From sequence record NC_041878.1: a stretch of DNA of 64,000 nt; one strand, given 5' to 3'. Below, piece by piece: positions 39,415 through 40,811 of the stretch (position 1 is its first letter; every line of letters starts with the position of its first letter). A program made the position numbers and the translations under genes. Under the pieces are notes generated by a model. That model did not search any database. It had not been told where the DNA came from and worked only from the letters and a program-made list of their open reading frames with translations.

Positions 39415-39437
39415 AAAAGGGAGCGTAAGCTCCCTTT
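39413..39437. terminator. Bidirectional terminator
   Basis: A6-GGGAGC-gtaa-GCTCCC-TTT between convergent genes. Confidence 0.75.
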
Positions 39438-40089
39438 ATGCTTTTACAAGTGGTTGAATACTTGCAATGTATGGTCGTAATTTATTAACTAGATCTTGTA
39501 CTTGAAGGTTATCGTATTCCGAGCCTAAAGTAATCATTACATATCCTACAACACCAACATCGATGTTTTGTATGATAGGTATTGAGACTACGCTTTTATA
39601 CTTTGAACCAATTTTTTTGTATCTCTCACAAGAATAAAGTTGTGCGGTATCAAAACGGTTTTCACATAAAAGTTGAATAGTTGCAATGTTTTCGTAATGA
39701 ACATTATTCAAAAGAATTTCTTGAATGTTGTTAGTACCATCTACCATCGGAACGACTGTGCTATCATTAGGTAATTTAGTGCCATCACTGGTTTCAGAAG
39801 TTACATTTACTTGACCAGTATACAATGATGTTCCCTTATCCGGTACGAACTTATACAGGACTACAGAAGATATATCAGGAAAATGAACAATCATTTTTCT
39901 GAATTCCATATTAATACTTTCAACACTTTGAGTCTCAAGTGTCTGAGAAGATAATATGGGATGCCCTTCTACTTCTGCTTTAACTGTAATATTATTAGAG
40001 TTAATCAGAACGAACAATCCAAGTACGAAACACGCAACAATAGAAAGTAGTCTTTTTAAGATAGAAAGATTTCCTTTACGATTAAACAT
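39436..40089 (-). CDS. T4 T-like holin paralogue (single TMD plus periplasmic GAF-like domain)
   Basis: TM LLSIVACFVLGLFVLI; SVVLYKFVPDK, EILLNNVHY, SVVSIP...VGYVMI parallel T4 T motifs SAVYSFRPKN, HLNGRHY, YMYSCP...AGTITM (recalled). Confidence 0.5.
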   Translation of the reverse strand: MFNRKGNLSILKRLLSIVACFVLGLFVLINSNNITVKAEVEGHPILSSQTLETQSVESINMEFRKMIVHFPDISSVVLYKFVPDKGTSLYTGQVNVTSETSDGTKLPNDSTVVPMVDGTNNIQEILLNNVHYENIATIQLLCENRFDTAQLYSCERYKKIGSKYKSVVSIPIIQNIDVGVVGYVMITLGSEYDNLQVQDLVNKLRPYIASIQPLVKA

Positions 40090-40100
40090 GTTTACTCTCC

Positions 40101-40811
40101 TTAGTATGAGATGTAATATCCTGTTTCACTTGCAATAGCTTTCGCAACAGTTAAGTATTGTGCAGCTTGTTCATCTGTTTCTGGAACATTTCTAAAGAAG
40201 ATGCTAACATATCCTTCAATCCGACTTGTTTTAATCGGAACTGAAATCATGTATTTTGCACCATCATTATATATGGCAGCTAGATTTGCAGGTGATAGAT
40301 ATTCATCACGTAACTCATTATCCGGTTGTAGATATTCACGGCATATAACTCCTATATCACCGATAAATGTCTTACCATTTAATATCATATTTGATTGTGC
40401 TCTAAAAGCACTTATAGGCAACCATTTCAAGTTGTACTTCTCTAAGTTAAGATTAGTATTTTTACTTGTAATACCTGTTACCAACACACGCCCTTGATAG
40501 AATGTGTCATTCTTCGGTACTAGTTTATAAACTAGTATCATTGCAAGATCGTTATTTTGTTGTATGATTCCACTCATTGTCGCATTTATACTTGACAACG
40601 TTTGAGGGCTTACTTGATATGAATCCGCAGCAGATGTACTTTGGGTCATGCTAGTAAATTTAGAACCAATATATGCACTCCAAGAATCAGCAGTAATATA
40701 TGCTGCTCCTAAAAATAGTGCACATAACGAAAATGCAAACATTCGGATGGCCGACATTCTAGAGAATACTTCAAGGATTTTTTTAATCACGTCAGCGTTA
40801 ATATTGAACAT
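40101..40811 (-). CDS. T4 T-like holin (single TMD plus periplasmic GAF-like domain)
   Basis: Amphipathic N-terminus, [18 protein letters not shown]; [24 protein letters not shown]...EGYVSIFF; 236 aa. Confidence 0.55.

Follow-up and report, generated by a model that had tools for sequence, protein, structure and literature searches.

Holin T of bacteriophage T4 (gene t; PF11031; structures 6PSK, 6PX4 and 6PXE) spans the membrane once, with a short N-terminus in the cytoplasm and a large domain in the periplasm (PMC11413866). Its antiholins are RI and RIII, and RI is a small helical protein that is directed to the periplasm. Phage lambda S105/S107 and phage 21 S68/S71 represent another arrangement, in which the inhibitor is a near-copy of the hole-former and acts by pairing; inhibitor and hole-former are produced from one gene using two start codons and differ in a few residues. 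In this study, we analyze CBB_311 and CBB_310, two adjacent genes in the 378-kb genome of the RaK2-type giant myovirus vB_PcaM_CBB (KU574722), which infects Pectobacterium. The window, by which we mean the whole stretch of 64,000 nucleotides that was analyzed (from record NC_041878.1), corresponds to bases 186001–250000 of the phage genome. CBB_311 is a candidate T-type holin, and CBB_310 is its candidate partner, which could be either an antiholin or a co-holin.

How does the CBB pair compare with these systems? The CBB proteins share with T a size of about 220 residues, one helix and a large alpha/beta domain of the GAF type, and the T motifs VY.F.P.N, L.G, YM.S.P and G.(V/I) are in register with those of the pair. 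CBB belongs to the wider T4 superfamily and, like T4, has scattered lysis genes, and CBB_311, like T, is accompanied by a second periplasm-directed protein. However, the CBB proteins are only about 12–18% identical to T, have no PF11031 match, lack the cysteine pair of T and occupy a different genomic position. Moreover, unlike RI, CBB_310 is itself paralogous to the holin-like protein. In that respect, the pairing proposed for CBB resembles the lambda and phage 21 systems, although CBB uses two genes whose products are about 25% identical, and control would run through the periplasmic domains. The pair also differs from canonical GAF sensor domains, such as free methionine-R-sulfoxide reductase (4MN7) or the domains in histidine kinases and phosphodiesterases, most of which reside in the cytoplasm as fusions with a signalling or catalytic module. 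In CBB, by comparison, the GAF-type domain stands alone, is exported behind a single helix, is encoded by a phage and is found, in relatives, in lysis cassettes.

A paralogous pair with likeness to holin T

CBB_311 (40101–40811, minus strand) encodes a 236-residue protein annotated as a putative membrane protein, and CBB_310 (39436–40089, minus strand) encodes a 217-residue protein annotated as a structural protein. They are the two adjacent opposite-strand open reading frames that an earlier note on this DNA had singled out from the sequence, and both were found where that note placed them. CBB_311 and CBB_310 are the sole minus-strand genes within a long plus-strand run of nucleotide-metabolism and replication genes, and the gene order in CBB is nrdA, nrdB, a MazG-like pyrophosphohydrolase gene, the pair, a small membrane protein gene, frd, RNase H and dda.

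Each protein contains one N-terminal membrane helix, as the earlier note had read from the translations. Hydropathy places the helix at residues ~21–39 of CBB_311 and ~10–28 of CBB_310, and likewise finds one helix near the N-terminus of T4 T; the AlphaFold secondary structure agrees with a single N-terminal helix in both CBB proteins. In CBB_311, a conserved and presumably cytoplasmic N-terminus of ~20 residues precedes the membrane helix; a further, long helix then leads into the exported domain (residues ~66–236), which has a GAF fold. CBB_310 has a short basic N-terminus, its hydrophobic helix may serve as a membrane helix or a signal anchor, and its exported domain is GAF-like. The charge distribution suggests that both proteins have their N-terminus inside the cell and their large domain in the periplasm. 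The short cytoplasmic region of T is stated to be essential for pore formation (PMC12162936), and the conserved short N-terminus of CBB_311 would be consistent with such a role.

Judged from their sequences, CBB_311 and CBB_310 are true paralogues that have diverged to about 25% identity. The two proteins find each other by BLASTP (E 8e-7), and hhalign aligns their families over 170 columns (97.9%, E 5e-13). The motifs VYK(L/F)VP, G(R/Q)V.VT, ILN and S(V/I)PI...GYV, which had been proposed as common to the two proteins, are present in both and in register in the BLASTP and hhalign alignments. The T4 strings to which the same proposal had likened them (AVYSFRPKN, HLNGRHY and YMYSCP...AGTI) are present in T4 T, and hhalign sets them opposite the CBB_311 motifs. 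The short N-terminus and the cysteine pair of CBB_310 are likewise seen, and C142 and C154 are invariant in 21 homologues. This pair differs from the cysteine pair of T (C175 and C207), which is invariant in 34 T homologues, and CBB_311 homologues contain no conserved cysteine within the exported domain.

The exported domain of CBB_311 adopts a GAF fold in an AlphaFold model built from a 31-sequence alignment (residues 66–236; mean predicted local distance difference test (pLDDT) score of 84.6). In a Foldseek comparison, which the earlier note had suggested as a check, the solved periplasmic domain of T4 T (6PX4, 6PXE and 6PSK) is among the top matches of the CBB_311 model, at ranks 3–18 with E of about 2e-5. 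When the fold matches are sorted by Z, however, T falls outside the top 50. Thus, the fold is consistent with T and does not single T out. The CBB_310 model is poorer (pLDDT of 65) and yields weaker GAF matches, with T at rank 30. The statement that the periplasmic domain of T is GAF-like has the Foldseek fold match as its basis rather than a citation, and the word GAF is not found in PMC11413866. At the sequence level, neither CBB_311 nor CBB_310 matches any Pfam model, including those for GAF; among 37 family members, PF01590 is touched by 11 (best E 9e-6) and PF13185 by 6. No match to PF11031, PF01590 or PF10841 was obtained when the complete CBB genome was scanned in six frames, and a search of the solved-structure sequence bank with both family profiles returned nothing useful.

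Profile comparison indicates a remote similarity to T. Against an alignment of 34 homologues of T4 gene t, the CBB_311 family aligns by hhalign over 174 columns (21%, E 1e-3, score 31) in a single line from the membrane helix to the C-terminus, and the CBB_310 family reaches 1.8%. A wider family of 41 proteins of about 210–280 residues, which was collected by an exhaustive profile search of 1.8 billion representatives, matches the T family over 122 columns at 88% with E 2.9e-6 and a score of 45. Null controls using reversed or column-shuffled T alignments score 20 or less, compared with 45 for the real alignment; at the level of profiles, the likeness to T exceeds chance. The neighbour clusters listed by a language model include some marked with Phage_holin_T (cosine 0.96) and none marked with another Pfam family.

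Lysis cassettes of distant relatives

The strongest evidence for a role in lysis is the genomic context of distant relatives. We surveyed the contigs of 12 distant family members and scanned the genes neighbouring the T-like gene. In four of them, the T-like gene lies directly after an endolysin gene, which is of the GH19 type in three (P0221, P0224 and P0227) and of the Muramidase family in one (P0229). P0243 probably follows a Muramidase-family endolysin gene directly, and P0240 lies four genes before an endolysin gene of the T4-lysozyme type. In four loci (L013, L022, L015 and L023), Rz-like or lipobox spanin-type genes follow the T-like gene. The three endolysins whose N-termini were read have no N-terminal membrane helix, and these cassettes thus need a true holin. 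In single-protein scans of viral contigs, two close loci or none were found.

In the recurrent arrangement, the endolysin gene is followed in turn by genes for the T-like protein, an exported protein (143–191 residues), a small DUF2644/phrog_1322 membrane protein, the i-spanin and the o-spanin. In five loci, the gene next to the T-like gene encodes a shorter exported paralogue, as indicated by hhalign of a five-sequence alignment against the family profiles (85–91%, E 1e-6 to 6e-6), and the downstream gene in L019 is a clear paralogue (E 2e-9). Therefore, conservation of the tandem, in which a membrane-anchored T-like GAF protein is joined by a second, exported paralogue, reaches well outside the giant phages. 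In the relatives, this tandem occupies positions that are typical of holins and antiholins, and a second exported paralogue in these cassettes would fit the idea of a holin with a holin-derived partner. The CBB_310 family shows no specific match to the cassette partner proteins (hhalign 0.4%); CBB_310 and the cassette partners each tie to the T-like family and not to each other.

One relative occupies an intermediate position. In a 125-kb T4-like metagenomic contig (L023:5001–6282), the T-like gene P0239 is followed directly by genes for an i-spanin-like protein of 133 residues and a lipobox o-spanin-like protein of 75 residues. These genes sit among nucleotide-metabolism genes (nrdB and thyX), midway between the CBB layout and the compact cassettes.

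Conservation and expression of the pair in RaK2-type phages

In word-based and tblastn searches, each of the 72 RaK2-type records proved to carry the two genes side by side at an unchanging location. These records cover the genera Mimasvirus, Eneladusvirus, Asteriusvirus and Alcyoneusvirus. A metagenomic relative with RaK2-type synteny (L010:5456–6720) shows the reversed order, with a 176-residue cysteine-rich partner containing one membrane helix upstream of a 239-residue T-like gene. In PHROGs, CBB_311 belongs to family 14938 (membrane protein) and CBB_310 to family 21209 (virion structural protein). The structural label of CBB_310 is inherited from its homologue RaK2 gp145w. Neither CBB_310 nor CBB_311 is listed in the CBB virion proteome, which comprises 55 proteins identified by mass spectrometry, and CBB_310 was rejected as a demonstrated CBB virion protein on the basis of that table. 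The CBB paper names CBB_187, which has an N-terminal membrane helix, as the endolysin and names no holin, and the RaK2 paper reports the T holin and RI as absent from RaK2 and finds neither RI nor RIII in its phage group. In one record, that of fEgEco12 (2024 record, 2026 paper), the CBB_311 homologue is labelled as a holin; annotation in the paper used BLASTP and HHpred, and its text neither analyzes the gene nor refers to the paralogue beside it.

The two genes appear to form one transcription unit. The 132-bp gap upstream of CBB_311 contains a late-promoter-like motif, GGTAAATA followed by T.TATA (40841–40858, minus strand), which lies 47 nt before the CBB_311 start codon. The GGTAAATA motif is invariant in the four genera and resembles the late consensus ATAAATA that the CBB paper reports before structural genes. 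Genome-wide, late-type motifs of this kind peak 30–60 nt before start codons, chiefly in the structural region, and the motif of CBB_311 lies at this usual spacing. The motif is part of a conserved island (40750–40862, minus strand) that exhibits 90–100% nucleotide identity among four phages of two genera, compared with 25–80% in the flanks. Besides the promoter motif, the island takes in the leader and the opening ~20 codons of CBB_311. The invariant leader has no stable RNA fold (z 0.3). Furthermore, TATAAATA, a T4 late-promoter word, is found at 40955–40962 on the minus strand, 144 nt upstream of CBB_311 and within the start of CBB_312. This site is invariant in four phages and may be a second start point, although the word alone is uninformative because the window contains 6 copies compared with 7.4 expected.

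CBB_310 starts 11 nt past the end of CBB_311, and its own ribosome-binding site (GGAGAG) overlaps the CBB_311 stop codon. Between CBB_310 and the converging CBB_309, a palindromic GC-rich hairpin of 9 pairs with a loop of 4 (39416–39437) extends over the final two nucleotides of the stop codon of CBB_310 (39436–39437). This hairpin is likely to be a two-way terminator that closes the two-gene unit, and the late-type promoter motif suggests that the pair is expressed late. Four public RNA runs, from a food-fermentation and another metatranscriptome, contain short contigs from CBB-like phages that cover the pair in patches. These contigs do not show expression of the pair because they give no strand, start or level. 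The food-fermentation metatranscriptome contigs represent several strains that are 90–99% identical to positions 38000–43000 of the window, which indicates that CBB-like phages occur in fermented-food samples.

On the other side of the gap, CBB_312 (40944–41318, plus strand) encodes a 124-residue protein with several membrane helices (PHROG 23591). Its divergent position next to the pair is conserved throughout the four genera, and the frd/RNase H/dda operon starts with this gene. A conserved promoter with a TGAAACG-type -35 element and a TATAAT -10 element (40885–40914, plus strand) faces CBB_312 and matches the divergent RpoD-like class of the CBB paper. Thus, a late-type motif and an RpoD-like promoter in one gap constitute back-to-back promoters of two classes.

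A proposed role in lysis and its alternatives

The pair is probably part of the lysis machinery. As to how, we propose, with a confidence balanced evenly between yes and no, that CBB_311 is a remote T-type single-helix holin and that CBB_310 is a duplicated partner that acts via the periplasmic domains. In this mechanism, the two-gene unit would be read from the T4-late-type promoter and end at the hairpin terminator, and CBB_311 would build up in the inner membrane late in infection. At a set time, CBB_311 would assemble into lesions via its membrane helix and short cytoplasmic N-terminus, and the lesions would collapse the membrane potential and free the membrane-tethered endolysin CBB_187. 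CBB_310 would be made from the same message as a diverged copy whose periplasmic domain contains a probable disulfide, and it would most likely pair with the periplasmic domain of CBB_311 and thereby delay or tune hole formation. CBB_310 would thus do the job that RI does in T4, as a copy of the holin itself.

Several observations weigh against this proposal. Phage_holin_T (PF11031) misses CBB_311 and CBB_310 (E up to 1 in the Pfam scan), the six-frame translation of the CBB genome (E up to 10) and all 37 family members examined. The invariant cysteine pair of T is missing from CBB_311 in the homologue alignment. When the wider profile was searched against sequences, canonical GAF structures gave a weak match (E 0.05) and T gave none. 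Given the weak GAF matches, the missing cysteine pair and controls that were limited to reversed or shuffled T alignments, homology of the pair family to T beyond a shared GAF-type fold is likely and not proven. The description of the pair as T4-T-like in the earlier note thus holds for the build, the GAF fold and the wider-profile match, but not for the Pfam Phage_holin_T family or the cysteine pair of T.

Other points of this kind come from the genomes. The CBB pair sits among nucleotide-metabolism genes, 120 kb from the endolysin gene CBB_187, which itself has no lysis genes around it. Seven of the 12 relatives encode, 1–3 genes downstream of the T-like gene, a small membrane protein of the DUF2644 family (PHROG 1322; 82–143 residues) that could be the real holin (L013:7168–7473, L015:1394–1648, L022:6318–6656, L020:1650–1997, L027:5698–6129, L028:2358–2648 and L029:797–1045). 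The CBB_310 homologue gp145w was detected in purified RaK2 virions by 2 peptides with 10.7% coverage. Finally, the CBB_310 homologue of the 121Q group (Asteriusvirus) is cut in two by a frameshift. In this 121Q/PBECO4 group, a one-base frameshift just past the YKGQ motif (L008:1880–2540, phage 121Q genes 39 and 38) separates a 105-residue reading frame, which retains the membrane helix and the first hairpin, from a 112-residue reading frame that has its own GGAG and ATG and no export signal. The same split occurs in fEgEco12 g405 and g404 (L002:4210–4870). The two-piece form is present in about 40 records, and the gene is whole in some E. coli phages (JNE01 and EJP2). Because of this split, CBB_310 would be an accessory protein rather than an obligatory half of a holin, and an antiholin-like role suits CBB_310 better than a co-holin role.

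Could the pair regulate lysis without forming the hole? In this alternative, which we regard as unlikely, CBB_311 and CBB_310 would be periplasmic GAF sensors or antiholins, and the hole-former would be a DUF2644-type protein in the compact cassettes and, in CBB, another small membrane protein such as CBB_312. The recurrence of DUF2644 proteins shortly after the T-like gene favours this view, as does the fact that GAF domains are typically sensors, and CBB_312 is a small multi-helix membrane protein with a conserved position next to the pair in four genera. However, CBB contains no DUF2644 match, and CBB_312 belongs to an operon behind a middle-type promoter, outside the late unit. In addition, T4 T demonstrates that a single-helix protein of the same build acts as a holin alone (PMC11413866). 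The DUF2644 protein is a candidate holin or antiholin in its own right, and we found no paper that mentions the family.

A second alternative holds that the pair is unrelated to lysis in CBB and consists of membrane-anchored or virion-associated GAF proteins with another role, such as superinfection exclusion, the sensing of a periplasmic ligand or a minor part in the particle. We consider this improbable. The detection of gp145w in CsCl-purified virions and the virion structural protein label in PHROG and several GenBank records point in this direction, but the RaK2 evidence consists of two peptides from a virion study that itself reports unexpected proteins and is weak evidence of a particle role, and neither protein is in the CBB virion proteome. 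Moreover, a membrane helix with an exported domain is unexpected for a particle protein. The location among nucleotide-metabolism genes likewise suits such a view, but T4-type lysis genes are also scattered, with t adjoining the tail-fibre gene 38, and the position of the relatives in lysis cassettes is hard to explain if the pair is unrelated to lysis. That the likeness to T reflects a generic GAF fold with chance motifs in ordinary duplicated GAF proteins is very improbable, given that the profile match to T is far above the reversed and shuffled controls and extends past the GAF core through the membrane helix and the adjoining region, that the whole-protein build and size are those of T, that the language-model neighbours include Phage_holin_T clusters and that the lysis context is independent of fold arguments.

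It is conceivable, though doubtful, that the pair represents an uncatalogued and widespread lysis module. The holin of this module would be T-like, and its periplasmic GAF domain would be under the control of an exported duplicate, an antiholin that arose by duplication of the holin. The module would occur as a free-standing late operon in all RaK2-type giant phages and, in other large phages, within compact cassettes in the order endolysin, T-like protein, paralogue, DUF2644 protein and spanins. Lysis may be delayed in response to a signal that the two GAF proteins perceive in the periplasm, which would make the module an independent counterpart of T4 lysis inhibition.

The module in compact cassettes offers an easy bench system, and correcting the labels "virion structural protein" and "membrane protein" would improve the annotation of at least 72 phage genomes. 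The RaK2-type giant phages, including CBB, GAP32, 121Q, PBECO4, RaK2 and many therapy candidates, had no assigned holin, and the pair would fill this gap if the proposed role is true. In that case, the class III holin type, with a single helix and a big ectodomain, would reach far past those relatives of T4 that Pfam covers. The pair would also be another system, of independent construction, for setting the time of lysis from the periplasm, with a regulator derived from the holin.
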